NCBI RefSeq assembly: GCF_963921235.1
Contig: NW_026948250.1
Coordinates: 62,001-126,000, forward strand
Source of the DNA: Mobula hypostoma
Lineage: Eukaryota
DNA length: 64,000 nt
Reading direction: 5' to 3'
Below the pieces are notes generated by a model. That model was not told the origin of the DNA and did no database searches. It saw only the letters and a program-made list of their open reading frames with translations. The translations under genes and the position numbers were made by a program. Every line of letters starts with the position of its first letter. Position 1 is the first letter of the stretch. Positions 15,267 to 48,123 of this stretch are shown here, one piece after another.

Positions 15267-15346
<80 letters not shown>

Positions 15347-16130: not shown

Positions 16131-16568
16131 CAGGGAAGCAGGTGGGGGTAGGGGAAAGAGAGGAGGGAGAGGGACACTGCATGATAGTTTGTGTGAGGGA
16201 GACGCAGACTGTATGTGTGTCTGAGGGAGGGAGGGTGGAACTATGTACGCTTTGTACCGTCCGGAGGGGTTGTTGAATCAGACGGGCAGTGCACAGCAGG
16301 TAGAGAAAGAGAGGGACTTCTGGCTGTAGTGGGTGGCGGGGGAGGGGGGTGGGGACGGAGAGAGCCGAGACGTGTGACAGCTAGAGACCGAGAGGGGCGT
16401 GTATCGGACGTCACGCAGGCAGGGCTGGTGTGGGACANNNNNNNNNNNNNNNNNNNNNNNNNNNNNNNNNNNNNNNNNNNNNNNNNNNNNNNNNNNNNNN
16501 NNNNNNNNNNNNNNNNNNNNNNNNNNNNNNNNNNNNNNNNNNNNNNNNNNNNNNNNNNNNNNNNNNNN

Positions 16569-17230
16569 GATGTGTTTGTGTGTGAGGGAGAGGGTGTGTG
16601 AGAGACAGGGAGGGTGTGTGAGGGAGAGATGTGTTTGTGTGTGTGTGAGAGCGAGAGGGTGTGTATGTGTGTGAAGGAGAGATGTGTTTGTGTGTGAGGG
16701 AGAGATGTGTGTGAGGGAGAGGGAGAGGGTGTGTGAGAGACAGGGAGGGTGTGTGAGGGAGAGAGAGAGGGTGTGTGAGGGAGAGATGTGTTTGTGTGTG
16801 TGTGAGAGCGAGAAGGAGAGATGTGTTTGTGTGTGAGGGAGAGATGTGTGTGAGGGAGAGGGAGAGGGTGTGTGAGAGACAGGGAGGGTGTGTGAGGGAG
16901 AGAGAGAGGGTGTGTGAGGGAGAGATGTGTTTGTGTGTGTGTGAGAGCGAGAGGGTGTGTATGTGTGTGAGAGAGGTGTGTGAAGGAGAGATGTGTTTGT
17001 GTGTGAGGGAGAGATGTGTGTGAGGGAGAGGGAGAGGGTGTGTGAGAGACAGGGAGGGTGTGTGAGGGAGAGAGAGAGGGTGTGTGAGGGAGAGATGTGT
17101 TTGTGTGTGTGTGAGAGCGAGAGGGTGTGTATGTGTGTGAGAGAGGTGTGTGAAGGAGAGATATGTTTGTGTGTGTGTGAGAGAGGAGACGTGCGAGGGA
17201 AGTGTGTGTGTGTGTGAGAGAGAGAGACAG
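16569..17230. repeat. GT/GA compound minisatellite
   Basis: Tandem GAGATGTGTTTGTGTGTGTGAGGGAGAG units. Confidence 0.9.
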
Positions 17231-19914
17231 AGGAAGTAATTATGCGATAAAGCAAGAAATGGTCAGTCCCAGCCCATCCCTGTTTTCCCGAGACTGTCAG
17301 GCGTGTCCATGTCTGCTCCGTCTCCCTGTCCAGGTGTCTTGTAAACGTACCATTTCCGCTGACAGCCCGCTCCGGCTCTGTGTCACAAACTAGTCCCCTT
17401 TAAATCCTCAGCCTCGCTCCTTAAACTTGGGGTCTCTTTGTGTGTTTGTGTGTGTGAGCGAGACAGACAGAGATCAGTATCCCACACCGGGAGTTTTACC
17501 GCACACAGCTCCAGTCTCCGCATCCCACGCCGGGACTTTTCTGCGCGCCGCTCCCGGCCTCTGCGTCCATCTCTGGGAGCTCCCGCACGCGGTTCCGGCC
17601 TCCCTGACCGGCGGGGCACTCACCGCTCCCTCCGCCACGAAGTTCCCTCTCCTGCAGCCCCCGCGCCCATCCCATCCCATCCCATGTGGGACCCTGGTCT
17701 CCGAGACAGCTCGGGAAGGGCGCAGGTCGTCGGCAGTCCCGCGGTCTGCTGGCGGGCTGCTCCGGACGTGGGAGGGAGGGAGGGAGGGAGGGAGAGGGCA
17801 GAGGGCAGGGACAGATGTTGGTATAAGTGTGTGCCGGGACTTTCGATGGATCGGCTCGCCGATGCTGCGTTTGGGTTCTGGAGGGAGGGAGCAGAGGGGG
17901 AGGGGGAGAATGGTGGGGTCAGGGTGACTGAGAGGGAGAGAGAGAGAAGATGGGAGAGAGGGAAGACAGAGAATGTTGCGGAGGGCGAGGACGAAGAGAT
18001 CGGGGAGACGGGGGGGGTAGGAGAGAGGGGACTCAGAGGCGGGGAGAGGGGCGGAAAGGAGAGCAGTAGGGGGTGGGGAGCAGAGAGAGGGGGACTGAGT
18101 GGAGGAGGGGGAGGGAGACGGAGGAGAGCGAAAGGTGGGGGGAGAAGAGGAAGACAGAAGAGAGGGGAGAGAGATGGTAACGAGAGGGGAGACTGGGTAT
18201 GGAGAATGGGAGGGAGGGGCTGGAAGGAGTTAGGAGAGGGGGGGAAGGCGGGTAGAGAAGGGAGTGGGGGGAAAGCGACGTGGTGAGTGCTGGGCGAGAG
18301 AGAGAGAGATCGTCCTTGTTCTGCCAACTACTAAGGATTATTCCTCTCGACTCTGTCCAAGATTCCTCTCCTTCCTCCCTTACCCCTCCCCTCTCCTCTC
18401 CTCCCCCACTTCCTCCTTCTCCGCCCCTTCCTTCCTTCCCCACCTCCCTTCCTCCCTCCTCTTACTATTCTCTCCCTTCCTTCCTCCCTTCCCCTTCCAT
18501 CCTTCCCTCTCCCTCTCATGTTCCTCCCCTGCTCCCTCCCGTCTCCCTCAATAGGTTTCAAAGGTCAGAGAAATATATACAATATACATTCTGAAATTCT
18601 TTTTCTTCGCAAACGTCCACGAAAATAGAGGAGTGCCCCCCCCCAAGAATGAATAACAGTGAAATATTAAAACCCCAAAGACCCCTCCCCAGCTCCGTCT
18701 TCCTTGCCCTCCTCTCCTTACCCCTTCCTCTCCCTCCCTCCCCTCTTGCTAATCTCACCCCTCCCTCCCTCAGTCTCCCTCCCGATCCTCCCTTCCCCTT
18801 CCCCCTCCCTCCAAAGTTGTTTCGAGGCCGGCCCTCTCTCTCTCCAAAGATTCCTGCTGCCCCACTCTATCCCTGTCCCTCTCCAACCATCGCCCATCCC
18901 AAATCCCGGCTGAGCTGTCCGTGAGAGGGGAGAACATGCGTGGTGACATCGCTGAGTGGAGGGCCATCACGAGGGGTGTTTGGGGACAGAGGGGGAGATG
19001 GAGAGAGCGAGGCCGTGGGGCAGGGAGAGGGAGGGTTATTCGGAGGGTGCGGGGGGAGCCCTCTGTGTGTTTGGGGAGGGGAAGGGATGGTGGAAGAGAA
19101 GAAGAGAGGAGGAGAGGAAAAGGGAACGATAGAGAGAGAGAGATAATGAGAGGAACAAGAAAGGAGAGAGAACGAGAGAAGGGAGGAGAGCTAGATGGAG
19201 AAAGAGAACAGGAGATGAAGGGGGTGAGAGAGAGCGACAGTGAGAGGAGGGGAGAGGGAGAAAGAGGGAAGGGGCGAGGAATGAGAGAGGGAGGAGGAGA
19301 GCTGGAGAAAAGGAACGAGAGAAGTAGGAAGGAGAGAGAGAACGAGCGAGGGTAAGGAAGAGAGAAGGAGAGAGGGAACGAGAGGGAAGAAGAGAGATGG
19401 AGAGAAGGAACGAGACAGGAATGGGAGAAAGAGAGAAGGGGAGAGAGGAGGAGAGTGAGAGACTGAAAGGAAAATGCGAGGAGATGGAGAGAGAGAGAGT
19501 GAGAGAAAGTGAGAGGGAGAGTGGGAAAGGAGAGAGTGAGTGATGGATGGATGGATGGAGGGGATAGTGAATCTAGGGTGAGGAAGAGAGACGGACCAGT
19601 TTGGTTGGGGGGGGTGGATCGGGAGCGTAGGAATGAGGGAGGAGAGAGAGAAGGAGATCGGGAGATGAAGGCGGCAGAGTGAGGGATGGGAGGAAAAAGC
19701 GAGGGGGAGAGAGGGAACAAAGGAATTGGAAAAAGAGGGAGATGGATAGAGGGAATGAGAGATTGAGGCAGGAGAGGAAGAGAGAAGGATGAGCGATGGA
19801 AGGAGAATGGGGAGAGGGAAGGAGAGAGGGGGAGAGGGAGGAAAGGGAAAGGCGGGAGAGGGGATGAGCGAGTGGAGGGAAGGAGACAGGGAGAGAGCAG
19901 AGGATAGAGTGAAG

Positions 19915-20310
19915 GAGAGGGGAAGAGGGAAGGAGTGAGGGGAAGGGGAGGAGAGAGGGAAGGAGAGGGGGAAGAGGGAAGGAGTGAGGGGAAGGGGAGG
20001 AGAGAGGGAAGGAGAGGGGGAAGAGGGAAGGAGTGAGGGGAAGGGGAGGAGAGAGGGAAGGAGAGGGGGAAGAGGGAAGGAGTGAGGGGAAGGGGAGGAG
20101 AGAGGGAAGGAGAGGGGGAAGAGGGAAGGAGTGAGGGGAAGGGGAGGAGAGAGGGAAGGAGAGGGGGAAGAGGGAAGGAGTGAGGGGAAGGGGAGGAGAG
20201 AGGGAAGGAGAGGGGGAAGAGGGAAGGAGTGAGGGGAAGGGGAGGAGAGAGGGAAGGAGAGGGGGAAGAGAGAAGGAGTAAGGGGAAGGGGAGGAGAGAG
20301 GGAAGGAGAG
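19915..20310. repeat. 49-bp polypurine tandem repeat within a ~2.7 kb purine-rich tract (19070-21790)
   Basis: GGAGAGGGGGAAGAGGGAAGGAGTGAGGGGAAGGGGAGGAGAGAGGGAA repeated. Confidence 0.9.
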
Positions 20311-21801
20311 AAGGGGCAGAGGAGAGGAGAGAGTGGGAGAGGGAGAGAGCGGAGGAGAAAGTGAAGGAGAGGGAGAGAGAGAGGGAGAGAAGGGGAGGGA
20401 GAGAGCAGAGAGAGGAGAAAGGGGAAGAAGGAAGGAGAAGAGGAGAGAGGGGAGGAGAAAGGGGAGAGGGAAGGTGAGAAGGGAAGAGAGAAGGAGAGGG
20501 GGCAAGGAGAGAGGAGAGAGACAAGGAGAGGGGGAGGGAAGGACAGAGGTGAGAGGCAAGGGGGAGGGAAGGAGAGAGGTGGGAGAGAAGGAGAGGTGGG
20601 AGAGAGAGGGAGAGGGGAGCGGGAAGGAGAGAGAGGAGAGAGGGCAAGAGAAAGGGGAGAGAGGAGAGGGGGAGAGGGACGCAGGGAGAGAGAAGGGGAG
20701 AGGGGAAGAGGGAAGGAGAGGGGAGAGCGGGGAGAGGGTAGGAGAGAGTGGGGGAGGGAGGGAGAGGGGGAAATGGAAGGAGAAGAGGAGAGGGAAGGAG
20801 AGAGGGAGTAGAGGTAAGTAGAGGGGGGAAGAGGGTGTTAAGGAGAGAGTGGGGAGAGTGAAGGAAAGGGGAAGGGAAAGAAAGAGGGAGAAGGAGAGTG
20901 GGAGTAGAGGGAAGGAGGGGGGAGAAGGAAGAAGAGAGGAGTGAGGGAAATAGAGAGGGAGAGGGAAGGAGAGTGGAGGAAGATGGAAAGAGAGAGGAGG
21001 TAGGAGTGTTAAGGAGAGAGGGGGAGAGTGAAGGGGAGAAGGAAGAAGACAGGAGTGTGAGACGTAGAGGGGAGAGGGAAGGAGAGAGGGGGGAAGGAAT
21101 ATGAGGGCAGAGGGAAAGCAATGGATGGTGATGGAGGGGAAGGAGTGAGGGAGCGGAGAGGGAGGGAGTGAGTGGGTGAGAGATGACGAGAGGGATGGGT
21201 GGAGAGAATGGGAGGAGGAGGAGAAGTAGATGGGAACAGGATTGAGAGAATGTGCGAGAGCAGAGGGAGAGGGAAGGAATGAAGCAGAGAGAGATTGAGG
21301 AGAATAAAAGAGGGAGGCAGAGAAGGGGAGAAGGAGTTAGGCCACCGAAGAGGAGAGGGAGGTGAGAAGAAAGTTGGGGGTGGGGTGGAAGAGGGAGCGA
21401 GGGTGGCAGAGATTTGGGAAGGGGCAGGGCAGATGGAGAATTGATAAGTGAGAGAAATTGGAGGGAGGGGAAGGGGACAACGGGAAGCGAGGGATGGAGT
21501 GAGTGTGAGAGAGAAATTGGAGGGAGGAGGAAAGAAAGAGAGAGAGAAATGCCGATGGTGAAGGGGTGGAACAGGAGGCAGCAAGGGGAGGAATAGAGAG
21601 GAAGGGACGAGGGGGAGAGGGAGGGGTGAGAGAGGTGAGAAAGACGAGATGGGGGATAGAGAGATGGGGGAGAGGTGAGTAACAGAGGGAGATGGAGAAG
21701 GGAACAGAGGGCGGGGAAGAGAAAGAGGGGACGAATCGAAGGGGAGAGAGGGTGAGATGGGTCAGGGCAGGAGAGGGGAGCTGGGAAGGCCGGACACAGG
21801 G

Positions 21802-23268
21802 ATGTTGGACAGAACTGGTCACACTGTCCAGCAGACAGATGGGGACCCTCTCACCCCCACCACACCCTTGTGAACACCCTCCCCCTTTCTCTACAACCGT
21901 CCCCCACCCCACCCCTCTCGGTCTCTCCGCAGGACCCCTAGATCCAAGCCACGTCGCCCTCCTGGCCCTCGCTCTCTGTGTCCTCGGCTCTGCCAGCACC
22001 CTCCCGCGGAGGGAGATCAGCCGGGAGCAGACGGTCAGCTCGGCCCGACTCCTCCGCAAGGCCCTGACGCAGGTCAACGCCAAACTCCTGGTACGTCACA
22101 GCGCGGGGCTCCCTCTACATCACCCCTACAGTGTGTCCCCCCCACTTTACCCACAGTGTGTCCCCCCACTTTATCCCCAGTGTGGGCACCGAGCACTCCC
22201 GGGACACGGGTCAGACACGGTGTGGAGCTCCCTCTACATCACCCCCACGGTGTGTCCCCCACTTTAACCCCAGTGTGGGCACCGAGCGTTCCCGGGACAC
22301 GGGTCAGACACGGTGTGGAGCTCCCTCTACATCACCCCCACAGTGTGTCCCCTCCACTTTATCCGCAGTGTGGACACCGAGCGCTCCCGGGACACGGGTC
22401 AGACACGGTGTGGAGCTCCCTCTACATCACCCCCACAGTGTGTCCTCCCCCCCACTTTATCCCCAGTGTGGGCACCGAGCGTTCCCGGGACACGGGTCAG
22501 ACACGGTGTGGAGCTCCCTCTACGTCACCCCCACAGTGTCCCCCCTCCCACTTTATCCCCAGTGTGGGCACCGAGCGTTCCCGGGACACGGGTCAGACAC
22601 GGTGTGGAGCTCCCTCTACGTCACCCCCACAGTGTGTCCCCCCCCCACTTTATCCCCAGTGTGGGCACCGAGCGCTCCCGGGACACGGGTCAGACACGGT
22701 GTGGAGTTCCCTCTACATCACCCCCACGGTGTGTCCCCCCACCCCCACTTTAACCCCAGTGTGGGCACCGAGCGCTCCCGGGACACGGGTCAGACACGGT
22801 GTGGAGCTCCCTCTACATCACCCCCACAGTGTGTCTCTACCCCCCCCACTTTATCCCCAGTGTCGGCACCGAGCGCTCCCGGGACATGGGTCAGACACGG
22901 TGTTGTGCTCCCTCTACATCACCCCCACAGTGTGTCCCCCCCCACTTTATCCCCAGTGTGGGCACCGAGCGTTCCTGGGACACGGGTCAGACACGGTGTG
23001 GAGCTCCCTCTACGTCACCCCCACAGTGTGTCCCCCCCCCCACTCTATCCCCAGTGTGGGCACCGAGCGCTCCCGGGACACGGGTCAGACACGGTGTGGA
23101 GCTCCCTCTACATCACCCCCAGCAATCTTCTATCCCTAGAGTGCGTGAGGTGACCGACTATTTTTGAATGTCTCATTGTAGTCCCACCTCGGTCTGTAGG
23201 GAAGTCACCAGCCCTCAATATGCCTCCCGCCCATTGAGCGATCGTCCGCCGGCTGGTACCGTTACCCG
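21802..23268 (+). pseudogene. Partial (exons 1-3), inactivated duplicate of the helical cytokine-like gene
   Basis: Exon copies at 21802-21838, 21933-22090 and 23182-23268. The exon-1 donor is GT>AT at 21839 and there is a GAG>TAG stop at 23197-23199. Exons 4-5 are absent (duplication junction ~23302). Confidence 0.8.
22100..23120. repeat. ~96-bp minisatellite (CACTTTATCCCCAGTGTGGGCACCGAGCGCTCCCGGGACACGGGTCAGACACGGTGTGGAGCTCCCTCTACATCACCCCCACAGTGTGTC...)
   Basis: Tandem array filling intron 2 of the pseudo-copy. Confidence 0.95.
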
Positions 23269-24540
23269 GTGAGTCAGTTCTACCTCCCCGACACCCGCCC
23301 CGACGCAGAGAGAGGAGAAAGGGGAAGAAGGAAGGAGGAGAGGAGAGAGGGGAGGAGAAAGGGGAGAGGGAAAGTGAGAAGGGAAGAGAGAAGGAGAGGG
23401 GGCAAGGAGAGAGGAGAGAGACAAGGAGAGGGGGAGGGAAGGACAGAGGTGAGAGGCAAGGGGGAGGGAAGGAGGAGAGGTGGGAGAGAAGGAGAGGTGG
23501 GAGAGAGAGGGAGAGGGGAGCGGGAAGGAGAGAGAGGAGAGAGGGCAAGAGAAAGGGGAGAAAGGAGAGGGGGAGAGGGACGCAGGGAGAGAGAAGGGGA
23601 GAGGGGAAGAGGGAAGGAGAGGGGAGAGCGGGGAGAGGGTAGGAGAGAGTGGGGGAGGGAGGGAGAGGGGGAAATGGAAGGAGAAGAGGAGAGGGAAGGA
23701 GAGAGGGAGTAGAGGTAAGTAGAGGGGGGAAGAGGGTGTTAAGGAGAGAGTGGGGAGAGTGAAGGAAAGGGGAAGGGAAAGAAAGAGGGAGAAGGAGAGT
23801 GGGAGTAGAGGGAAGGAGGGGGAGAAGGAAGAAGAGAGGAGTGAGGGAAATAGAGAGGGAGAGGGAAGGAGAGTGGAGGAAGATGGAAAGAGAGAGGAGG
23901 TAGGAGTGTTAAGGAGAGAGGGGGAGAGTGAAGGGAAGAAGGAAGAAGACAGGAGTGTGAGACGTAGAGGGGAGAGGGAAGGAATAAGAGGGCAGAGGGA
24001 AAGCAATGGATGGTGATGGAGGGGAAGGAGTGAGGGAGCGGAGAGGGAGGGAGTGAGTGAGTGAGAGATGACGAGAGGGATGGGTGGAGAGAATGGGAGG
24101 AGGAGGAGGAGTAGATGGGAACAGGATTGAGAGAATGTGCGAGAGCAGAGGGAGAGGGAAGGAATGAAGCAGAGAGAGATTGAGGAGAATAAAAGAGGGA
24201 GGCAGAGAAGGGGAGAAGGAGATAGGCCACCGAAGAGGAGAGGGAGGTGAGAAGAAAGTTGGGGGTGGGGTGGAAGAGGGAGCGAGGGTGGCAGAGATTT
24301 GGGAAGGGGCAGGGCAGATGGAGAATTGATAAGTGAGAGAAATTGGAGGGAGGGGAAGGGGACAACGGGAAGCGAGGGATGGAGTGAGTGTGAGAGAGAA
24401 ATTGGAGGGAGGAGGAAAGAAAGAGAGAGAGAAATGCCGATGGTGAAGGGGTGGAACAGGAGGCAGCGAGGGGAGGAATAGAGAGGAAGGGACGAGGGGG
24501 AGAGGGAGGGGTGAGAGAGGTGAGAAAGACGAGATGGGGG

Positions 24541-25421
24541 TGTTACGTACCCCGTAACTGGGTTGCCAAACCAGCAGAAATGGATCACTCAGTTGGAGTC
24601 TGGAGTACTAGAACTAAGAAAGTTTTATTAAAGAAACAAGCAACACATTAATCGAAAGGATAATAAATGCAACAGTTCAGCGATGATAAACGCACATGTG
24701 CACAGAATTAAGATAACAGCATCAATCAAGCTCTATCGTTGTCTAGGGGTAAATGACCAATTTCAAAATGACTCAAAGTTCAGTCCAGTTTAGTAGTTCA
24801 GTTCGCAGTAATCGTTGCCATGGCGGTGGACAATGTGGGGGAAGAGAGAGATAGAATAGGAACAACTCATCATTCAGAACGGCTTCACTCACAGACCAGC
24901 GAGATGGCTCACAGACCAGCGAGATGGCTCACAAACAGCTTTTTGGGCGGGTCCTTGGTGATGTCACCTGAGGTCACCGACTGTGACCCCTCCTCCAGAT
25001 GCGGTCGATCCTCTGCAGTGAACCCGGCACCCAGGCAAGGGCGGACACACACCGGGTTCCCGCTGATCGTACCTTTCCACCCTTGTCGTTGTCTGGGACT
25101 TCTCACCCACTCGTGAGAAGCGCACCGCTTCCAGGGTCTCGTTACCTCGGGTGGCGTGTGTGTCTGTCTTAGCGAACCTGTCCCTTTTTATCCCCCTGCT
25201 GGGGTATCGCCTGTCCATCACTTCAAACAGTTCAAGGTTCAAAGGGGGGAGCCGCTCCAGACAGCTCTTCCTCCCACATCCCTTCATTACACATCTCCAG
25301 ACGCTGCTCCATTGTTCCTTATCTCTCCTTCCCCTGAGGGCAGGTGGCAGACCAACTGCTGATGCCACTGATGCTAGCCCAGGCCAGCAAACACCTTAAT
25401 TTTATGTGTATTCTCGTAACA
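24541..25421 (-). mobile_element. Solo LTR (Gypsy-like), 881 bp
   Basis: TGTTACG...CGTAACA termini with a GGGG target-site duplication. The empty site GAGATGGGGGATAGA is present in the paralogous segment at ~21646-21660. A minus-strand AATAAA (~24624) and TATA-like ATAAAAAGGG (~25190) suggest minus orientation. Confidence 0.85.
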
Positions 25422-25571
25422 GGGGATAGAGAGATGGGGGAGAGGTGAGTAACAGAGGGAGATGGAGAAGGGAACAGAGGGCGGGGAAGAGAAAGAGGGG
25501 ACGAATCGAAGGGGAGAGAGGGTGAGATGGGTCAGGGCAGGAGAGGGGAGCTGGGAAGGCCGGACACAGGG

Positions 25572-28021
25572 ATGTTGGACAGAACTGGTCACACTGTCCA
25601 GCAGACAGGTGGGGACCCTCTCACCCCCACCACACCCTTGTGAACACCCTCCCCCTTTCTCTACAACCGTCCCCCACCCCACCCCTCTCGGTCTCTCCGC
25701 AGGACCCCTAGATCCAAGCCACGTCGCCCTCCTGGCCCTCGCTCTCTGTGTCCTCGGCTCTGCCAGCACCCTCCCGCGGAGGGAGATCAGCCGGGAGCAG
25801 ACGGTCACCTCGGCCCGACTCCTCCGCAAGGCCCTGACGCAGGTCAACGCCAAACTCCTGGTACGTCACAGCGCGGGGCTCCCTCTACATCACCCCTACA
25901 GTGTGTCCCCCCCACTTTATCCCCAGTGTGGGCACCGAGCGCTCCCGGGACACGGGTCAGACACGGTGTGGAGCTCCCTCTACATCACCCCCACAGTGTC
26001 CCCCCCCCACTTTATCCCCAGTGTGGGCACCGAGCCCTCCCGGGACATGGGTCAGACACGGTGTGGAGTTCCCTCTACATCACCCCCACGGTGTGTCCCC
26101 CCACCCCCACTTTAACCCCAGTGTGGGCACCGAGCGCTCCCGGGACACGGGTCAGACACGGTGTGGAGCTCCCTCTACATCACCCCCACAGTGTGTCTCT
26201 ACCCCCCACTTTATCCCCAGTGTCGGCACCGAGCGCTCCCGGGACACGGGTCAGACACGGTGTGGAGCTCCCTCTACATCACCCCCACAGTGTGTCCCTC
26301 CCCCACTTTATCCCCAGTGTGGGCACCGAGCGCTCCCGGGACACGGGTCAGACACGGTGTGGAGCTCCCTCTACATCACCCCCACAGTGTGTCCCTCCCC
26401 CACTTTATCCCCAGTGTGGGCACCGAGCGCTCCCGGGACACGGGTCAGACACGGTGTAGAGCTCCCTCTACATCACCCCCACAGTGTCCCCCCCTCCCAC
26501 CACTTTATCCCCAGTGTGAGCACTGAGCGCTCCCGGGACACGGGTCAGACACGGTGTGGAGCTCCCTCTACATCACCCCCACAGTGTGTCCCCCGACTTT
26601 ATCCCCAGTGTGGGCACCGAGCGCTCCCGGGACACAGGTCAGACACGGTGTCGTGCTCCCTCTACATCACCCCCACAGTGTGTCCCCCCCCCCACTTTAT
26701 CCCCAGTGTGGGCACCGAGCGCTCCCGGGACACGGGTCAGACACGGTGTGGAGCTCCCTCTACATCACCCCCACAGTGTGTCCCCCGACTTTATCCCCAG
26801 TGTGGGCACCGAGCGCTCCCGGGACACGGGTCAGACACGGTGTCGTGCTCCCTCTACATCACCCCCACAGTGTGTCCCCCCACTTTATCCCCAGTGTGGG
26901 CACCGAGCGCTCCCGGGACACGGGTCAGACACGGTGTGGAGCTCCCTCTACATCACCCCCACTTTATCCCCAGTGTGGCCACTGAGAGCTCCCGGGACAC
27001 GGGTCAGACACGGTGTGGAGCTCCCTCTACATCACCCCCACAGTGTGTCCCCCCCACTTTATCCCCAGTGTGGACACCGAGCGCTCCCGGGACACGGGTC
27101 AGACACGGTGTGGAGCTCCCTCTGCATCACCCCCAGCAATCTTCTATCCCTAGAGTGCGTGAGGTGACCGACTATTTTTGAATGTCTCATTGCAGTCCCA
27201 CCTCGGTCTGGAGGGAAGTCACCAGCCCTCAATATGCCTCCCGCCCGTTGAGCGATCGTCCGCCGGCTGGTACCGTTACCCGGTGAGTCAGTTCTACCTC
27301 CCCGACACCCGCCCCCAGCCGTCTCGACCCGCCTGTCTGTCTCCTGCCCCCATCCCGCTCCGTGTGCCGGTCTCCGACTGACGGCCTCTCCCTCAGGGTC
27401 TCGCCGGGGCCAGGTTTTGCCTCTACCGAAAGTGCCTGCGGCGTTTGGAGGCGACCCTCCTGAGGAAGTACGGATTCGGCCTCGATAGCACCCCCCTCGG
27501 GCTCGGCCTGCTGATCGGGTGCCTCGGTAAGCTTTGCGTGAGTCACCGCCCCACCCCTGCACACCCCACCCTTCCCGGCGCGGACCGGCAATCGAGTTGA
27601 GTAGCTGGCGGGGAGGGCGGCGGCAGGCCGCCACTCTCGGGACCATCCTGACATGTCCCCAGCCCGGCCGAGCGAGGACAGAGCCGCGGGGCGAGATTGT
27701 GAGCGGAGGCATCCTGATTATGAGCGAGATGATATCGAGGGACGGTCGAGGTGGGAGGGGGGAGGGTAACCTCGGGGTAGGAGGGTAGGACACGCACCGT
27801 GAACGGTAGGGGGTGTCGAGGGTCCCTCGCCCCGTGTTTAACCGCGGCCTCCCCTTGTTCTGCAGGGCACCACCGTTTCCTGCCGGGAGCCTCTCGATCC
27901 CGGGCCTGCCTTCTGGACGAGCGAGGTGGAAGGAGGGGTGAACGTGATCCGTGACCTCTTCTCGGACCTGGAGCTCCTGGTTGGACAGTCCGACAGCCTT
28001 GTGTCTGACGACCCGGCCTAG
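25572..28021 (+). CDS. Putative secreted long-chain class-I helical cytokine (IL-6/G-CSF/IL-11/IL-27p28-like), 5 exons: join(25572..25608,25703..25860,27196..27282,27397..27537,27866..28021), 192 aa
   Basis: All introns are GT-AG with pyrimidine tracts; phases are 1,0,0,0 and the spliced frame is open to TAG at 28019-28021. Protein: MLDRTGHTVQQTG/PLDPSHVALLALALCVLGSASTLPRREISREQTVTSARLLRKALTQVNAKLL/SHLGLEGSHQPSICLPPVERSSAGWYRYP/GLAGARFCLYRKCLRRLEATLLRKYGFGLDSTPLGLGLLIGCLGKLC/GTTVSCREPLDPGPAFWTSEVEGGVNVIRDLFSDLELLVGQSDSLVSDDPA. Exon 1 is the least certain (alternative in-frame ATG at 25527). Confidence 0.72.
25870..27135. repeat. ~96-bp minisatellite (cytokine-like gene intron 2)
   Basis: Same unit as 22100-23120, with more copies. 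Confidence 0.95.
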
Positions 28022-28299
28022 GCCGGTCCTGGGTGGAGGGAGTTGGGGGTGCGGGTGTCGGGGGGGGGCGGTAGGGGGGTGGTTGGTGTCCGTCAGCGGT
28101 TGTATTATTCGCCCTGGGTACGGAGATGGTCGCCATTGTAATGTCAAATTCCCGTTAACAGAGGGGCGGACGGCCGGGGCGGTGGAATCTCTCAGCCACG
28201 CAACCCGTTCCTGAGGGGGTGGGGTAAACTCTCTTTCCATCGGTGAGCCCTGGTAACAGAGGGCAATTCCCTGCCCCGGGCCCCCGCTTATACAGCGAG

Positions 28300-28690
28300 T
28301 CTCTCCGTCGGTAGGTCAGTCCCGGAGGGACTGTCCCTCTGTCGAGGATCGCTGGCGGTCGAGGGAGCCTCTCCGACGGGGGCGCCACGGCTACAGGAGG
28401 GTCCTCTCCGCCACTTGTCCCCTATCGGAGGGACCCTCTCCAAATGGAGGCCCTGGCGACAGCGGCAGTTTCTCCGACGGGGGAGTCGCGGGTACAGGAG
28501 GCTCCTCTCCGCCACTTGTCCCCTATCGGAGGGACCCTCTCCAAATGGAGGCCCTGGCGACAGCGGCAGTTTCTCCGACGGGGGAGTCGCGGGTACAGGA
28601 GGCACCTCTCCATCGCACATCCCGTTCTCGGAGGGACCCTCAGTGGGGGAGCTTCGCTGACAGAGGCGGTCTCTCCGTCTCGCGGCCCCA
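28300..28690. repeat. 101-bp GC-rich tandem repeat in the predicted 3' UTR
   Basis: CCAAATGGAGGCCCTGGCGACAGCGG occurs at 28440 and 28541, with degenerate flanking copies. Confidence 0.85.
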
Positions 28691-28876
28691 CCCCGTCTTC
28701 AGGGAGAGGGTCCCCTCCGTCGACAGCCGGCCCTGGAAACAAAGGCGGTCTCTCTGTCCGTGCAGGGAAGGCTTTCCACCAGCGAGAGTGGCCCGGACGC
28801 TCCGGAATGAGACGGGCAACGATATCGACGAAGGATTCCCGCTGGTGTTACTTTATGAGCCCCAGCTGCAAAGTTC

Positions 28877-28882
28877 AATAAA
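28877..28882 (+). terminator. Polyadenylation signal of the cytokine-like gene
   Basis: AATAAA followed by a U/GU-rich element (TCTTCCGTGTGCGTTTT), about 860 nt after the stop. Confidence 0.65.
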
Positions 28883-28959
28883 TCTCAGGGATATTGTTTC
28901 ATCTTCCGTGTGCGTTTTCACTTATGTCCTGTCCCGACCAGTCACAACAGGACCCCGGT

Positions 28960-29825
28960 CCCGTCCCATTCACTCCACCGTCCGCACTCACAATAGACCC
29001 CATCCCTTCCCATTCACTTCCAATAGACCCCACCCCTTCCCATTCACTCCCACCGTCCGCACTACCAATAGACCCCACCCCTTCCCATTCACTCCCACCG
29101 TCCGCACTACCAATAGACACCACCCCTTCCCATTCCTCCCAATAGACCCCACCCTTCCCATTCACTCCCAATAGACCCACCCCTTCCCGTTCACTCCCAA
29201 TAGACCCACCCCTTCCCGTTCACTCCACCGTCCGCACTCACAATAGACACCTCCCCTTCACATTCACTCCCAATAGACCCCACCCTTCCCATTCACTCCC
29301 ACCGTCCGCACTCCCAATAGACGCCACGCCTTCCCATTCACTCCCAATAGACCCCACGCCTTCCCATTCACTCCCACTGTCCGCACTCCCAATAGACGCC
29401 ACGCCTTCCCATTCACTCCCACTGTCCGCACTCCCAATAGACGCCACGCCTTCCCATTCACTCCCACTGTCCGCACTCCCAATAGACGCCACGCCTTCCA
29501 ATTCACTCCCAATAGACCCCACACTTCCCATTCACTCCCACTGTCCGCACTCCGAATAGACCCCACCCCTTCCCATTCACTCCCAATAGACCCCACCCTT
29601 CCCATTCACTCCCACTGTCCGCACTCCCAATAGACGCCACGCCTTCCAATTCACTCCCAATAGACCACACCCTTCCCATTCACTCCCACTGTCCGCACTC
29701 CCAATAGACCCCACCCCTTCCCATTCACTCCCAATAGACCCCACCCTTCCCATTCACTCCCACTGTCCGCACTCCCAATAGACGCCACGCCTTCCCATTC
29801 ACTCCCACCGTCCGCATTCCCAAAT
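28960..29825. repeat. Minisatellite (CCCATTCACTCCCAATAGACCCCACCCTT / ..GTCCGCACTC) between the convergent 3' ends
   Basis: Tandem 30/48-bp units. Confidence 0.92.
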
Positions 29826-30394: not shown

Positions 30395-30648
30395 TTAAAC
30401 GAGGGGGTTCAGGACCCTCCCCATGAAAAATGGGTACCCCAGCACGTCGTCCCAGAGCATCCAAAGGAAGGGCCGAGCGGCGTCGAAGACTGTGATGGTC
30501 CGGCCAACGGACATGGAGGTGGCGGCGGCGGCCTCCACTCCGTCCTCGTCCAGCGAGACGAACGCGCGGTGGGTGACCGAGGTGATGGACATGCCCGCCC
30601 CGGGGGTCAGTCCGCACAGGTTGGGGTAGAAGAGGGCGTTGTTTAAAC
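30395..30648 (-). CDS. SERPING1: C1-inhibitor-like serpin, terminal exon with reactive centre loop
   Basis: (G)LNNALFYPNLCGLTPGAGMSITSVTHRAFVSLDEDGVEAAAATSMSVGR-TITVFDAARPFLWMLWDDVLGYPFFMGRVLNPLV*. The NLCGLT, GVEAAAA hinge, SVxR|T P1-P1' and PFL..LWD...P.FMGRV motifs match C1-inhibitor. Acceptor ctcccag|GT, phase 1, 254 nt coding. Confidence 0.9.
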
Positions 30649-30961: not shown

Positions 30962-32220
30962 CCCACTTTATCCCCAGCGTGGGCACCGAGCGCTCCCGAG
31001 ACACGGTGTGGAGCTCCCTCTACATCACCCCCACTGTGTGTCTCCCCCCCCCCCCCCACTTTATCCCCAGTGTGGGCACCGAGCGTTCCCAGGACTCGGG
31101 TCAGACACGGTGTGGAGCTCCCTCTACATCACCCCCACAGTGTGTCCCCCCATTTTATCCCCAGTGTGGGCACCGAGCGCTCCCGGGACACGGGTCAGAC
31201 ACGGTGTGGAGCTCCCTCTACATCACCCCCACAGTGTGTTCCCCCCCCCACTTTATCCCCAGTGTGGGCACCGAGCGCTCCCGGGACACGGGTCAGACAC
31301 GGTGTGGAGCTCCCTCTACATGACCCCCACAGTGTGTCCCCCCACCCCAATTATCCCCAGTGTGGGCACCGAGAGCTCCTGGGACATGGGTCAGACACGG
31401 TGTGGAGCTCCCTCTACATCACCCCCACAGTGTGTCCCCCCCCACTTTATCCCAAGTGTGGGCACCGAGCGTTCCCGGGACACGGGTCAGACACGGTGTG
31501 GAGCTCCCTCTACATCACCCCCACAGTGTGTCCCCCCCCCACTTTATCCCCAGTGTGGGCACCGAGCGCTCCCGGGACACGGGTCAGACACGGTGTGGAG
31601 CTCCCTCTACACCACCCCCACAGTGTGTCCCCCCACTTTATCCCCAGTGTGGGCACCGAGAGCTCCCGGGAGACGGGTCAGACACGGTGTGGAGCTCCCT
31701 CTACATCACCCCCACAGTGTGTCACCCCCCCCACTTTATCCCCAGTGTGGGCACCGAGCGTTCCCGGGATACGGGTCAGACACGGTGTGGAGCTCCCTCT
31801 ACGTCACCCCCACAGTGTGTCCCCCCACTTTATCCCCAGTGTGGGCACCGAGAGCTCCCGGGACACGGGTCAGACACGGTGTGGAGCTCCCTCTACATCA
31901 CCTCCACAGTGTGTCACCCCCCCCCCAACTTTATCCCCAGTGTGGGCACCGAGCGCTCCCGGGACACGGGTCAGACACGGTGTAGGGCTCCCTCTACGTC
32001 ACCTCCACAGTGTGTCCCTACCCCCCCACTTTATCCCCAATGTGGACACCGAGCGCTCCCGGGACACGGGTCAGACACGGTGTGGAGCTCCCTCTACGTC
32101 ACCCCCACAGTGTGTCCCCCCCACGTTATCCCCAGTGTGGGCACCGTGCGCTCCCAGGACACGGGTCAGACACGGTGTGGAGCTCCCTCTACATCACCCC
32201 CACAGTGTGTCCCCCCCCCC
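30962..32220. repeat. ~96-bp minisatellite (third array, in the SERPING1 last intron)
   Basis: Same unit and orientation as 22100 and 25870. Confidence 0.95.
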
Positions 32221-35200
32221 TACACACCTCCCCGTCACCGTCACACCTCCCTCCCCTACAACCCTCCCCGTCACCGTCATCCCCTCCCTCCCCCACACAT
32301 CTCCCCGTCACCCTCACCCCTCCCTCCCCTACACACCTCCCCGTCACCGTCATCCCCTCCCTCCCCTACACAACTCCCCGTCACCGTCATCCACTCCCTC
32401 CCCCACACACCTCCCCGTCTACGTCACCCCCTCCCTCCCCTACACACCTCCCCGTCACCCTCACCCCTCCCTCCCCCACACACCTCCCCGTCACCGTCAT
32501 CCACTCCCTCCCCCACACACCTCCCCGTCACCGTCATCCCCTCCCTCCCCTACACACCTCCCCGTCACCCTCAGCCCTCCCTCCCCTACACACCTCCCCG
32601 TCACCGTCATCCCCTCCCTCCCCCACACCCCTCCCCGTCTCCGTCACCCCTCCCTCCCCTACATCCCTCCCCGTCACCCTCACCCCTCCCTCACCTACAC
32701 ACCTCCCCGTCACCTTCATCCACTCCCTCACCTACACACCTCCTCGTCACCGTCATCCCCTCCCTCCCCCACACCCCTCCCCGTCTCCGTCACCCCTCCC
32801 TCCCCTACACCCCTCCCTGTCACCCTCAACCCTCCCTCCCTTACACCCCTCCCCGTCACCATCACCCCCTCCCTCCTCTACACACCTCCCTGTCACCCTC
32901 AACCCTCCCTCCCCCACACACCTCCCCGTCACCCTCACCCCTCCCTCCCCTACACACCTCCCCGTCTCCATCACCCCCTCCCTCCCCTACACCCTCCCCG
33001 TCTCCATCACCCCCTCCCTCCCCTACACCCTCCCCGTCTACATCACCCCCTCCCTCCCCTACACCCTCCCCGTCTCCATCACCCCCTCCCTCCCCTACAC
33101 CCCTCCCCGTCACCGTCATCCACTCCCTCCCCCACACACCTCCCCGTCACCGTCATCCACTCCCTCCCCCACACACCTCCCCGTCACCGTCATCCCCTCC
33201 CTCCCCCACACACCTCCCCGTCACCCTCACCCCTCCCTCCCCCACACCCCTCCACGTCTCCGTCACCCCCTCCCTCCCCTACACACCTCCCCGTCACCAT
33301 CACCCCTCCCTCCCCTACATCCCTCCCCGTCACCGTCATCCAATCTCTCACCTACACACCTCCCCGTCACCGTCATCCACTCCCTCCCCCACACACCTCC
33401 CCGTCACCGTCATCCACTCTCTCACCTACACACCTCCCCGTCACTGTCATCCCCTCCCTCCCCTACACACCTCCCCGTCACCCTAACCCCTCCCTCCCCC
33501 ACACATCTCCCCGTCACCCTCACCCCTCCCACCCCTACACACCTCCCCGTCACCGTCATCCACTCTCTCCCCCACACCCCTCCCCATCTCCATCACCCCC
33601 TCCCCTACATCCCTCCCCGTCTCCATCACCCCCTCCCTCCCCTACACACCTCCCCGTCACCGTCATCCCTCCCTCCCCCACACACCTCCCCGTCACCGTC
33701 ATCCACTCCCTCCCCCACACCACTCCCCGTCACCGTCACCCCTCCCTCCCCTACACAACTCCCCGTCACCCTCACCCCTCCCTCCCCCACACACCTCCCC
33801 GTCACCATCATCCCCTCCCTCCCCCACACACCGCCCCGTCACCATCATCCCCTCCCTCCCCCACACACCTCCCCGTCACCATCATCCCCTCCCTCCCCCA
33901 CACAACTCCCCGTCACCGTCATCCCCTCCCTCCCCTACACACCTCCCTGTCACCGTCATCCCCTCCCTCCCCCACACCCCTCCCCGTCACCGTCATCCAC
34001 TCCCTCCCCCACACACCTCCCCGTCACCGTCATCCCCTCCCTCCCCTACACCCCTCCCCGTCTCCATCACCCCCTCCCTCCCCCACACACCTCCCCGTCA
34101 CCCTCACCCCTCCCTCCCCTACACCCTCCCCGTCACCGTCATCCACTCTCTCACCTACACACCTCCCCCGTCACCATCATCCACTCCCTCCCCTACACCC
34201 CTCCCCGTCACCGTCATCCCCTCCCTCCCCTACACACCTCCCCGTCACCCTCACCCCTCCCTCCCCCACACACCTCCCCGTCACCCTCACCCCTCCCTCC
34301 CCCACACACCTCCCCGTCACCGTCATCCCCTCCCTCCCCCACACACCTCCCCGTCACCGTCACCCCTCCCTCCCCCCCCTACACCCCTCCCCGTCACCGT
34401 CATCCACTCCCTCCCCCACACACCTCCCCGTCACCGTCATCCCCTCCCTCCCCCACACACCTCCCCGTCACCCTCACCCCTCCCTCCCCCACACACCTCC
34501 CCGTCACCCTCACCCCTCCCTCCGCCACACACCTCCCCGTCACCGTCACCCCTCCCTCCCCTACACACCTCCCCGTCACCGTCACCCCTCCCTCCCCTAC
34601 ACCCCTCCCCGTCACCGTCATCCCCTCCCTCCCCCACACATCTCCCCGTCACCCTCACCCCTCCCTCCCCTACACACCTCCCAGTCACCGTCATCCACTA
34701 CCTCCCCCACACACCTCCCCGTCTACGTCACCCCCTCCCTCCCCTACACACCTCCCCGTCACCCTCACCCCTCCCTCCCCCACACACCTCCCCGTCACCG
34801 TCATCCACTCCCTCACCTACACACCTCCCCGTCACCGTCATCCACTCCCTCCCCTACACACCTCCAGGTCACCGTCATCTACTCCCTCCCCTACACACCT
34901 CCCCGTCACCCTCACCCCTCCCTCCCCCACACACCTCCCCGTCACCGTCATCCCCTCCCTCCCCCACACACCTACCCGTCAGCGTCACCCCTCCCTCCCC
35001 TACACCCCTCCCCGTCACCGACTCCCTCCCCCACACACCTCCCCGTCACCGTCATCCCCTCCCTCCCCCACACACCTCCCCGTCACAGTCAACCCTCCCT
35101 CCCCTACACACCTCCCCGTCACCGTCACACCTCCCTCCCCTACAACCCTCCCCGTCACCGTCATCCCCTCCCTCCCCCACACATCTCCCCGTCACCCTCA

Positions 35201-38200
35201 CCCCTCCCTCCCCTACACACCTCCCCGTCACCGTCATCCCCTCCCTCCCCTACACAACTCCCCGTCACCGTCATCCACTCCCTCCCCCACACACCTCCCC
35301 GTCTACGTCACCCCCTCCCTCCCCTACACACCTCCCCGTCACCCTCACCCCTCCCTCCCCCACACACCTCCCCGTCACCGTCATCCACTCCCTCCCCCAC
35401 ACACCTCCCCGTCACCGTCATCCCCTCCCTCCCCTACACACCTCCCCGTCACCCTCACCCCTCCCTCCCCCACACACCTCCCCGTCACCGTCATCCCCTC
35501 CCTCCCCCACACCCCTCCCCGTCTCCGTCACCCCTCCCTCCCCTACAACCCTCCCCGTCACCCTCACCCCTCCCTCACCTACACACCTCCCCGTCACCTT
35601 CACCCCTCACCGTCATCCCCTCCCTCCCCTACACACCTCCCCGTCACCCTCAGCCCTCCCTCCCCTACACACCTCCCCGTCACCGTCATCCCCTCCCTCC
35701 CCCACACCCCTCCCCGTCTCCGTCACCCCTCCCTCCCCTACATCCCTCCCCGTCACCCTCACCCCTCCCTCACCTACACACCTCCCCGTCACCTTCATCC
35801 ACTCCCTCACCTACACACCTCCTCGTCACCGTCATCCCCTCCCTCCCCCACACCCCTCCCCGTCTCCGTCACCCCTCCCTCCCCTACACCCCTCCCTGTC
35901 ACCCTCAACCCTCCCTCCCTTACACCCCTCCCCGTCACCATCACCCCCTCCCTCCTCTACACACCTCCCTGTCACCCTCAACCCTCCCTCCCCCACACAC
36001 CTCCCCGTCACCCTCACCCCTCCCTCCCCTACACACCTCCCCGTCTCCATCACCCCCTCCCTCCCCTACACCCTCCCCGTCTCCATCACCCCCTCCCACC
36101 CCTACACCCTCCCCGTCTACATCACCCCCTCCCTCCCCTACACCCTCCCCGTCTCCATCACCCCCTCCCTCCCCTACACCCCTCCCCGTCACCGTCATCC
36201 ACTCCCTCCCCCACACACCTCCCCGTCACCGTCATCCACTCCCTCCCCCACACACCTCCCCGTCACCGTCATCCCCTCCCTCCCCCACACACCTCCCCGT
36301 CACCCTCACCCCTCCCTCCCCCACACCCCTCCACGTCTCCGTCACCCCCTCCCTCCCCTACACACCTCCCCGTCACCATCACCCCTCCCTCCCCTACATC
36401 CCTCCCCGTCACCGTCATCCAATCTCTCACCTACACACCTCCCCGTCACCGTCATCCACTCCCTCCCCCACACACCTCCCCGTCACCGTCATCCACTCTC
36501 TCACCTACACACCTCCCCGTCACTGTCATCCCCTCCCTCCCCTACACACCTCCCCGTCACCCTAACCCCTCCCTCCCCCACACATCTCCCCGTCACCCTC
36601 ACCCCTCCCACCCCTACACACCTCCCCGTCACCGTCATCCACTCTCTCCCCCACACCCCTCCCCATCTCCATCACCCCCTCCCCTACATCCCTCCCCGTC
36701 TCCATCACCCCCTCCCTCCCCTACACACCTCCCCGTCACCGTCATCCCTCCCTCCCCCACACACCTCCCCGTCACCGTCATCCACTCCCTCCCCCACACC
36801 ACTCCCCGTCACCGTCACCCCTCCCTCCCCTACACAACTCCCCGTCACCCTCACCCCTCCCTCCCCCACACACCTCCCCGTCACCATCATCCCCTCCCTC
36901 CCCCACACACCGCCCCGTCACCATCATCCCCTCCCTCCCCCACACACCTCCCCGTCACCATCATCCCCTCCCTCCCCCACACAACTCCCCGTCACCGTCA
37001 TCCCCTCCCTCCCCTACACACCTCCCTGTCACCGTCATCCCCTCCCTCCCCCACACCCCTCCCCGTCACCGTCATCCACTCCCTCCCCCACACACCTCCC
37101 CGTCACCGTCATCCCCTCCCTCCCCTACACCCCTCCCCGTCTCCATCACCCCCTCCCTCCCCCACACACCTCCCCGTCACCCTCACCCCTCCCTCCCCTA
37201 CACCCTCCCCGTCACCGTCATCCACTCTCTCACCTACACACCTCCCCCGTCACCATCATCCACTCCCTCCCCTACACCCCTCCCCGTCACCGTCATCCCC
37301 TCCCTCCCCTACACACCTCCCCGTCACCCTCACCCCTCCCTCCCCCACACACCTCCCCGTCACCCTCACCCCTCCCTCCCCCACACACCTCCCCGTCACC
37401 GTCATCCCCTCCCTCCCCCACACACCTCCCCGTCACCGTCACCCCTCCCTCCCCCCCCTACACCCCTCCCCGTCACCGTCATCCACTCCCTCCCCCACAC
37501 ACCTCCCCGTCACCGTCATCCCCTCCCTCCCCCACACACCTCCCCGTCACCCTCACCCCTCCCTCCCCCACACACCTCCCCGTCACCCTCACCCCTCCCT
37601 CCGCCACACACCTCCCCGTCACCGTCACCCCTCCCTCCCCTACACACCTCCCCGTCACCGTCACCCCTCCCTCCCCTACACCCCTCCCCGTCACCGTCAT
37701 CCCCTCCCTCCCCCACACATCTCCCCGTCACCCTCACCCCTCCCTCCCCTACACACCTCCCAGTCACCGTCATCCACTACCTCCCCCACACACCTCCCCG
37801 TCTACGTCACCCCCTCCCTCCCCTACACACCTCCCCGTCACCCTCACCCCTCCCTCCCCCACACACCTCCCCGTCACCGTCATCCACTCCCTCACCTACA
37901 CACCTCCCCGTCACCGTCATCCACTCCCTCCCCTACACACCTCCAGGTCACCGTCATCTACTCCCTCCCCTACACACCTCCCCGTCACCCTCACCCCTCC
38001 CTCCCCCACACACCTCCCCGTCACCGTCATCCCCTCCCTCCCCCACACACCTACCCGTCATCGTCACCCCTCCCTCCCCTACACCCCTCCCCGTCACCGA
38101 CTCCCTCCCCCACACACCTCCCCGTCACCGTCATCCCCTCCCTCCCCCACACACCTCCCCGTCACCCTCACCTCTCCCTCCCCCACACACCTCCCCGTCA

Positions 38201-48120: not shown

Positions 48121-48123
48121 TCT

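Follow-up and report, generated by a model that had tools for sequence, protein, structure and literature searches.

A conserved elasmobranch gene between SLC43A1-like and serpin genes in Mobula hypostoma, a probable new long-chain helical cytokine

Gene content and exon model of the locus

We have analysed a stretch of 64,000 nucleotides from the ray Mobula hypostoma (hereafter the window, positions 62001-126000 of the unplaced 180-kb contig CAWUEV010000145.1, assembly GCA_963921235.1), in which a first-pass annotation, made by reading the letters alone, had proposed a hidden five-exon gene for an IL-6/G-CSF-type helical cytokine between SLC43A1 and SERPING1. All positions given below are those of the window, unless another sequence is named. 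A genuine gene does lie in this interval. Its upstream neighbour is an MFS_1 (SLC43A1-like) transporter gene on the minus strand (7846-17680), and downstream we found the last exon of a serpin gene, also on the minus strand (30398-30640; Pfam Serpin, E 1.1e-13, profile positions 292-370 of 370), standing tail to tail with the cytokine-like gene about 1.5 kb beyond its poly(A) site. The same arrangement is seen in M. birostris, where a 446-residue serpin follows the orthologous gene tail to tail. To call the gene hidden was an overstatement, since NCBI Gnomon models exist at the locus. They carry the name LOC134342181, 'uncharacterized protein', with one isoform called 'WW domain-binding protein 11-like'.

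In silico, five exons with GT-AG boundaries (25572-25608, 25703-25860, 27196-27282, 27397-27537 and 27866-28021, all on the plus strand) join into an open reading frame (ORF) of 192 codons with phases 1-0-0-0. Its product has a hydrophobic N-terminal stretch and six cysteines in the mature part, a CTGAC lies upstream of exon 4 and an AATAAA is found at 28877-28882, so that these elements of the first-pass annotation were all recovered in silico. The candidate exon 1 (25572-25608) consists of an ATG, 12 codons and one further nucleotide before a CAG/GT donor, and is an in silico exon without RNA support. Exon 2 (25703-25860) encodes the hydrophobic signal-like segment and the putative helix A, with an acceptor in phase 1 of the cytokine frame, and is present in the RNA, in the NCBI models and in the orthologues. 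Exon 3 (27196-27282, 87 nt), backed by RNA junctions and orthologues, covers the presumptive AB-loop region with a conserved GLEG...SICLP...W motif. Exon 4 in its ancestral form (27397-27537, 141 nt, the size also found in Stegostoma and M. birostris) would hold helices B and C and contains the FCLYxKC motif. The coding part of exon 5 (27866-28021), seen in the RNA, comprises the SC.EP loop, the FWTSEV.GG motif, the putative helix D and a TAG stop. It is followed by a 3' untranslated region (UTR; 28022-28890), delimited by RNA depth and contig ends, with a 101-nt repeat in 2.4 copies and the AATAAA. Intron 2 is largely filled by a minisatellite (25878-27135) of about 13 copies of a 94-nt unit. 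The GC content around the gene is 60-65%, and long ORFs are found on both strands, including an antisense one of 393 aa (27059-28240) that spans exons 3-5. Because of this, an open frame is in itself no evidence of a gene here.

Conservation between rays and sharks

A HMMER search over 1.84 billion protein representatives gave four proteins only, of which three are Mobula isoforms and the fourth is XP_059498889.1 from the zebra shark Stegostoma tigrinum (LOC132207396), with an E-value of 9.1e-15 and 41-44% identity. Word-indexed protein searches also returned only Mobula and Stegostoma matches. The M. birostris orthologue is about 94% identical, and its isoform X1 (P0006) contains exons 2, 3, 4 (141 nt) and 5 in one frame, the same as that of the 192-codon ORF; its exons 3 and 4 measure 87 and 141 nt. 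In Stegostoma, whose gene spans 39 kb, the corresponding exons are 87, 141 and 159+3 nt long, with phase-0 boundaries at equivalent places. The exon 2 acceptor in phase 1 and the three phase-0 introns were thereby found in the RNA and in two other species, and the first-pass model recovered the ancestral coding exons 2-5 correctly.

Between M. hypostoma and Stegostoma, 71 of 175 residues are identical, with three small indels, and the identities are spread over all four exons (14/48 in exon 2, 13/29 in exon 3, 18/47 in exon 4 and 26/51 in exon 5). The proportion of differences is 0.445 at non-synonymous sites (pN) and 0.69 at synonymous sites (pS). The motifs EISRE, GLEG..Q.SICLP, W.R, AG.RFCLY.KCL, SC.EP and FWTSEV.GG..V.RDL..DL are conserved between ray and shark, as are four cysteines; two further cysteines of M. 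hypostoma, one of them also present in M. birostris, are not found in Stegostoma. Because of this ray-shark conservation a chance ORF is ruled out, and the 141-nt form of exon 4 is ancestral. The two Mobula species differ by 10 synonymous and 11 non-synonymous changes (dS 0.072, dN 0.029), with about 3% divergence in the introns. The resulting omega of about 0.40 would be compatible with moderate constraint, 21 differences being too few to be decisive.

One could argue that the locus produces a spliced non-coding RNA and that the ORF is a product of chance in GC-rich DNA, given that long ORFs abound on both strands and that the transcripts described below begin in the promoter region of another gene and lack a proper start codon. 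Such an origin would hardly leave this degree of identity to a shark protein over four exons, nor exon sizes, phases and four cysteines conserved between ray and shark, two lineages that parted long ago, and we consider it exceedingly improbable.

Splicing and ends of the transcripts

RNA evidence came from the contigs of four M. hypostoma runs (X1-X4) placed on 25000-29000. The 25860/27196 junction was present in all four runs and the 27282/27397 junction in two of them, the exon 5 acceptor at 27866 was confirmed, and the RNA ended at approximately 28887-28912, just past the AATAAA. Exon 4 was joined to exon 5 as 27526/27866 (runs X2 and X3), giving an exon of 130 nt and a shift of frame. All the exon-4-containing RNA used this 27526/27527 donor, and none of the contigs used the one at 27537. 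After the 130-nt exon 4, exon 5 is read in the shifted frame for 28 codons, up to a TGA at 27952-27954. Skipping of exon 4 (27282/27866) was detected in three runs, as the sole isoform in X1 and X4 and as the deeper one in X3 (56 vs 22.6); it keeps the frame and removes 47 residues.

Two minor features were seen in the same contigs. Run X2 contained a minor joint, 27698/27866, with GT..AG ends (window 27699-27865), which is a donor inside intron 4 or a partial intron retention. One contig of run X3 lacked 46 nt (28031-28076) at the G-rich start of the 3' UTR; its GG..GG ends are not splice-like, and the gap probably reflects an indel polymorphism or a slip of the assembler in the G-run.

Regarding the 5' end, no RNA contig showed splicing of the candidate exon 1, and contigs covering 25372-25626 and 25485-25649 ran unspliced across its donor. 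Contigs containing exon 2 matched the locus from 25698 and carried before it an unlike end of 226 nt, of which the 30 letters adjoining 25698 were located at 15646-15675, followed in the genome by CGCAG/GT. It follows that the partner of exon 2 ends at 15680, about 10 kb upstream, and that the match seems to start at 25698 because CGCAG is common to both joined sites. This RNA-supported first exon (15450-15680, plus strand) lies antisense within the range of the MFS gene, has a second copy at 63536-63766, and contains a 20-codon upstream ORF and the ATG at 15466 that is used by NCBI isoform X2. With 15680 joined to 25703, the transcript can be read upstream in the cytokine frame as far as a stop codon, and no ATG is met on the way.

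According to these results, the five-exon model stands for exons 2, 3 and 5, for the exon 4 acceptor and for the poly(A) end; of its four predicted junctions, the RNA bears out 25860/27196, 27282/27397 and the acceptor at 27866, while exon 1 with its junction and the exon 4 donor at 27537 found no support. The 192-aa product proposed for M. hypostoma is encoded by none of the observed mRNAs: exon 4 is shifted or skipped, exon 1 is unsupported, and an upstream duplicate of exon 2 (exon 2', described below) can be included.

The database models and the start codon

The NCBI models get round this lack of an ATG by routes that appear to be artefacts. Model P0002 starts at the ATG at 15466, maps to 15466-15680, continues through exon 2' in another frame into exon 2 in the cytokine frame, and skips exon 4. 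Model P0001 starts at 17846, includes a Pro-rich exon, continues into exon 2' and exons 2-3 and, having used exon 4 in its 130-nt form, terminates in the shifted frame. The mapping of this model defines alternative 5' exons on the plus strand at 17846-17911 and approximately 18361-18563, with a start 166 nt from the end of the coding range of the divergent MFS gene. The Pro-rich N-terminus of P0001 looks like an artefact, and it is because of this stretch that the model was mis-named 'WW domain-binding protein 11-like'; the N-termini of the NCBI models look artefactual in general. Across the contigs of the four runs and the NCBI models, no M. hypostoma sequence reads through exons 2-5 in a single frame. 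Both sets of 5' exons, at 15450-15680 and at 17846, lie antisense to, or head to head with, the MFS gene, and we infer that the sampled tissues show read-through from the promoter region of the SLC43A1-like gene and not the activity of the gene's own promoter, which, by analogy with cytokine genes in general, may be inducible.

We also considered where translation of the cytokine frame would begin. The candidate exon 1 could reasonably serve as the first exon of the gene itself; M. birostris has an identical sequence there, but the flanks are equally identical. An in-frame ATG at 25462 was rejected as the start, being 81 codons upstream, at the head of Gly/Glu/Pro-rich sequence that is unconserved in character. 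In M. birostris the annotated N-terminus opens within a (TG)n microsatellite (MCVCVC...), and the equivalent M. hypostoma exon is out of frame. In Stegostoma an exon 23 kb upstream supplies three codons of the N-terminus, and exon 2 reaches 93 nt beyond the 5' end of its Mobula counterpart. Eleven codons 5' of the annotated exon 2 acceptor lies an in-frame ATG (position 32845 of the Stegostoma locus sequence, L002) that could possibly be the start in the shark, and the signal-peptide intron may be either lost or retained there; loss of the signal-peptide intron has been reported for thorny skate IL-6 (PMC13081863). In every transcript model the hydrophobic stretch lies 38-142 residues from the annotated start. 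It has a mean Kyte-Doolittle value of 2.2-2.6, is followed by small residues and is conserved in ray and shark, and because of this a signal peptide on the cytokine-like protein appears likely.

Lesions specific to M. hypostoma

The orthologous locus of M. birostris (L003) has a single copy of exons 2 and 3 and no long terminal repeat (LTR). In M. hypostoma a partial tandem duplication of 3.8-4.0 kb affects the 5' exons: 21652-22090 matches 25422-25860 with two differences, and 23122-23286 matches 27136-27300 with three. Exon 2' (21933-22090, plus strand) has one difference from exon 2, a G at 22038, and is spliced before exon 2, in another frame, in the NCBI models. Exon 3' (23182-23268, plus strand) has a GAG>TAG change that creates a stop at 23197 in the cytokine frame, and the upstream copy of the candidate exon 1 donor carries GT>AT at 21839. 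The exon 2' variant G (22038, equivalent to 25808) was present in an RNA contig of run X2; exon 3' variants were not seen in the RNA contigs, which had no other letters at 27211 or 27247.

A second lesion is a solo-LTR-like insertion of 881 nt (24541-25421), which carries TGTTACG...CGTAACA at its ends, has a GGGG target duplication and lies some 150 nt 5' of the ATG at 25572, in the downstream gene copy only. Its summed RNA word depth was 1.4e4-5.9e4 in run X1 and 2.2e3-2.2e4 in the other runs. The element is a member of an abundant, transcribed, genome-wide repeat family, inserted after the local duplication. This repeat explains why the RNA depth is so high at 25000-25400, and a small RNA as the source of that depth was rejected.

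The third lesion affects exon 4, whose end reads CTC GGT AAG in M. hypostoma vs CTC GGC AAG in M. birostris. Because of this silent C>T change at 27528, a new 5' splice site (GT at 27527-27528, plus strand) with the sequence G/GTAAGC arises 11 nt early, as seen both in the comparison of the two species and in the RNA joint of runs X2 and X3. The ancestral donor, GTGAGT at 27538, is intact in M. hypostoma.

These lesions raise the question of whether the M. hypostoma copy is still productive. The family could be real and this copy a young pseudogene or non-productive locus, with transcripts that are read-through from the SLC43A1-like promoter, an explanation compatible with our reading of the family as a whole. 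It would account for the finding that no M. hypostoma contig or model has exons 2-5 in one frame, for the absence from M. birostris of the duplication, the LTR and the cryptic donor alike, and for transcripts across 15680-25703 without an AUG in the cytokine frame. However, exons 2-5 are still open, the dN/dS against M. birostris is about 0.4 (from just 21 differences), the ancestral donor is intact, and the contigs, which cover the sampled tissues, drop rare isoforms. In addition, cytokine genes are often silent in unstimulated cells. We therefore regard a non-productive copy as a serious possibility that falls a little short of probable.

Family assignment

The searches for a family used residues 59-218 of M. 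birostris P0006 (about 95% identical), together with pieces of P0001 and P0002, in place of the 192-aa product. In the feature comparison of the ESM Atlas, the ten nearest named cluster sets of the shark protein scored 0.89-0.92, with 195-208 shared features, and the Mobula protein fell largely on the same clusters at 0.84-0.87; these scores are leads without E-values, and shuffled proteins reach 0.9 in 4-10% of cases. The clusters nearest to the shark protein were LIF/IL-12/IL-31/IL-23, IL-11, leptin, IL-23A, IL-6/G-CSF and IL-12A. With the nearest families excluded, the next were growth hormone (GH, 0.81), Drosophila Unpaired (0.77), the IL-10 family (about 0.70) and EPO (0.69). The Atlas model of the shark protein, with a predicted template modelling score (pTM) of 0.60, gave a template modelling score (TM) of 0.73 to an IL-11 cluster over 152-155 of 162-166 residues, and 0.55-0.56 to IL-31. 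For the Mobula protein, the structure part of the Atlas returned no match above a TM of 0.39. Because two orthologues of about 43% identity point the same way, as does the gene architecture, we would place the family, with moderate confidence, in the IL-6/IL-12 branch of the long-chain class-I cytokines.

Within that branch, the IL-6/G-CSF/MGF families share the PROSITE signature C-x9-C-x6-G-L-x2-[FY]-x3-L. The C-x9-C of this signature is not in the three-species alignment, which has a C-x4-C (FCLYxKC) instead and a cysteine in SICLP before it. For the IL-12 alpha chains (PF03039, PF16649), neither the Mobula nor the Stegostoma proteins gave a Pfam match. The by-eye likenesses to G-CSF, p19 and p28 that the first-pass annotation had listed carried no statistical signal.

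A different long-chain branch, EPO/TPO-like or GH/PRL-like, has also to be weighed. Human EPO has coding exons of 13, 146, 87, 180 and 156 nt with phases 1-0-0-0, and its AB-loop motif is I-x-V-P-D-T-x6-W-K-R. The 87 nt of exon 3 and the 156 nt of exon 5 equal the EPO sizes, and the shark AB loop, read from the alignment as I-C-L-P-D-T-x6-W-N-R, resembles the EPO motif. But EPO/TPO (PF00758) gave no Pfam match and no PDB match with either exon 3 or the whole protein at E-values up to 10; the N- and C-terminal cysteine pair of EPO/TPO is absent, there being no cysteine at either end of the mature protein; and the Atlas values for EPO and GH are below the 0.89-0.92 of the IL-11, IL-6, IL-12 and leptin clusters. 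Membership of such a branch is thus very unlikely in our view. The gene failed every membership test that was feasible with IL-6/G-CSF, the IL-12 alpha chains and EPO/TPO, and we therefore do not consider it a member of any named family.

Repeats and neighbouring sequence

A block of about 16 kb (1-15914) recurs at 48087-64000, some 48.1 kb downstream, the aligned blocks being 99.6-100% identical. Within it lie the 5' part of the MFS gene, N-masked stretches and the first exon supported by RNA (15450-15680, repeated as 63536-63766). On this unplaced contig, the recurrence may represent a true segmental duplication, or else an artefact of haplotype or assembly. The N-masked stretches (12348-12479, 13165-13314, 14847-15210 and 16438-16568, with copies within 60434-63296) all fall within the range of the minus-strand MFS gene and are probably conserved exons of it.

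The minisatellite of intron 2 belongs to a 94-98-nt type that occurs three times, at 22162-23121 and 25878-27135 (intron 2 of both gene copies) and at 31051-32217, past the serpin last exon; the copy number in intron 2 is 9.9 in the upstream gene copy and 13.2 in the downstream one. M. birostris also has this minisatellite in intron 2 and in the serpin region. Directly after the third array lies a satellite of 15.7 kb (32213-47881, extending to 48122), made of about 428 copies of a 37-nt C-rich unit with 89% matches. In M. birostris, the minisatellite that matches the one preceding this satellite lies approximately 600-1,100 nt inside the annotated range of the serpin gene. Beyond its last exon, the serpin gene of the M. 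hypostoma contig may be broken or wrongly assembled. GA-rich arrays are found elsewhere in this repeat-rich window, and an Rfam scan of it gave no match.

The 10-kb flanks of the Stegostoma gene contain no called gene. A 5' stretch of the M. birostris serpin range (L003 25593-25934) matches these flanks in tblastx at several places, among them L002 3-344 and 49643-49942, the best match being that at 3-344, with 54% identity over 114 codons. A Pfam scan of the two 114-residue translations (L003 25593-25934 and L002 3-344) found no family, and the matching stretch probably represents a repeat common to both or a conserved exon that lacks annotation.

Discussion

Taken together, our data show the exons, the junctions, the conservation and the lesions of an elasmobranch coding gene that is disturbed in three ways in M. 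hypostoma. They make it fairly likely that its product is a long-chain helical cytokine of class I, probably a new one of elasmobranchs; the fold, the receptor class, secretion and the true start codon are matters of inference. The ancestral gene would have consisted of a short signal-peptide exon and exons of 158, 87, 141 and 156 nt with phases 1-0-0-0. It would encode a secreted protein that measures about 160 residues once the signal has been removed, with four long helices and four conserved cysteines, belonging to the superfamily of IL-6, IL-11, G-CSF and IL-12. Such a protein would be expected to bind a class-I receptor complex of the gp130 type and to signal through JAK/STAT. In M. hypostoma, the duplication of the 5' exons has produced an upstream copy that is disabled and whose exon 2 nevertheless enters mRNAs, a solo LTR lies just upstream of the presumed start, and the silent GGC>GGT change has brought the exon 4 donor forward by 11 nt. 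The transcripts seen, from promoters at, or antisense to, the SLC43A1-like gene, either skip exon 4, with loss of the putative helices B and C, or shift frame before helix D.

Several observations weigh against this interpretation. Orthologues are known from three species only, and a convincing start codon beside the signal-like segment was found in none of the three, all the annotated N-termini being different. The RNA evidence extends to the tissues that the four runs happened to sample, and their contigs drop rare isoforms. No cytokine family was matched by the Mobula and Stegostoma proteins in hmmscan against Pfam-A at E-values up to 10, phmmer and a profile hmmsearch found no match in the PDB, and HMMER over the 1.84 billion representatives reached no named family, only Mobula and Stegostoma; the first-pass annotation was right that the gene has no assignable name. 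AlphaFold2, run with the three-species alignment as input, gave models of low confidence, with a predicted local distance difference test (pLDDT) of 49.3 for the mature M. birostris protein and of 39.5 for that of Stegostoma, and a pTM of 0.33. Foldseek against the PDB and an Atlas shape search with these models returned only noise. To these has to be added the limit on the Atlas scores given above. The AlphaFold2 models have four long helices in their secondary structure, but at this confidence they are uninformative, and we do not count them as evidence against the fold. The assignment to an IL-6/G-CSF-type cytokine in the first-pass annotation is in keeping with the nearest Atlas look-alikes (IL-11, IL-6/G-CSF, IL-12/IL-23, LIF and leptin), while our own AlphaFold models are too poor to add to it.

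It could be that the protein is a conserved secreted helical protein other than a cytokine (another hormone, a structural or an antimicrobial protein), and that the likeness reflects generic features of small Leu-rich helical proteins. The lack of any significant sequence match to a cytokine family would fit this, as would AlphaFold2 models without a confident bundle and a bacterial rubrerythrin-type helix bundle that also appears at a TM of 0.50-0.51. Yet the two orthologues, at only about 43% identity, fall on shared cytokine clusters, and all the named neighbours are helical cytokines or hormones, even with the first seven families removed. The TM of 0.73 to IL-11 extends over nearly the whole protein, and the exon number and phases fit those of long-chain cytokine genes. 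We accordingly find a non-cytokine unlikely and keep to a helical cytokine.

Cytokines diverge so fast that in cartilaginous fishes, the oldest lineage to possess adaptive immunity, their repertoire is still incomplete; several 'missing' cytokines were found only via synteny or structure. CNTF lies about 1 Mb from SERPING1 in human, and LIF/OSM, IL27/CTF1 and CSF3 are found in the regions paralogous to this one. It would be plausible for the SLC43A1-SERPING1 site to carry an old paralogue. We tentatively suggest, as an idea somewhat more doubtful than the cytokine assignment itself, that sharks and rays have kept here an undescribed lineage of the IL-6/IL-12 superfamily, which may be an old paralogue lost by bony vertebrates near CNTF and may have its own receptor usage among the gp130 paralogues. 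Our full-text search of the literature, like the papers cited below, gave no cytokine between SLC43A1 and SERPING1 and no description of the present gene. Cartilaginous fishes are reported to have IL-6 (duplicated), IL-11, p19, p28, p35, LIF/OSM, CNTF and CLC/CT-like genes and a triplicated gp130 (Redmond et al. 2018, PMC6238376). If our assignment is true, the gene would add an IL-6/IL-11-like ligand to a system with triplicated gp130 (PMC6238376) and would be a candidate ligand for orphan receptor chains. CSF3 and CSF3R are reported to be unannotated in whale shark and ghost shark, and the former species has an IL6-like gene beside MED24 (PMC7717901). The locus is also a clear case of misannotation around a small inducible gene, where read-through transcripts, a duplicated exon and a silent donor-creating change have led to database proteins with artefactual N-termini.

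Among known systems, leptin (PF02024) is a long-chain four-helix hormone of similar size, with Atlas feature scores of 0.91-0.92. It differs in giving no Pfam match and no cluster among the Atlas structural matches listed, and in having a gene of two coding exons and a single C-terminal disulfide. The alpha chains of the IL-12 group (IL-12p35, PF03039; IL-23p19, PF16649; IL-27p28) are approached at 0.89-0.92 through the clusters with IL12/IL23 domains, and the 'FCL' at the start of helix B and the 'CLP' in the AB loop are, as we judge by eye, presumably reminiscent of p19 and p35; Pfam matches are lacking, p19 has 4 exons and p35 has 7. IL-6/G-CSF/MGF (PF00489, PF16647) have similar exon sizes and an Atlas feature score of 0.90. 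They differ in the absence of a Pfam match and in the F-C-L-Y-x-K-C motif of the new family, whose gene is at neither the IL6 (TOMM7) nor the CSF3 (MED24) locus. As for IL-11 (PF07400), the new family has no Pfam IL11 match, another genomic neighbourhood and four conserved cysteines, whereas mammalian IL-11 is not known to have cysteines. Still, IL-11 is the best structural look-alike, with the Atlas TM of 0.73 for the shark orthologue and feature scores of 0.89-0.92. It is also similar in size, and the new family would share with it long helices A and D, with an aromatic residue (FW) where helix D starts.

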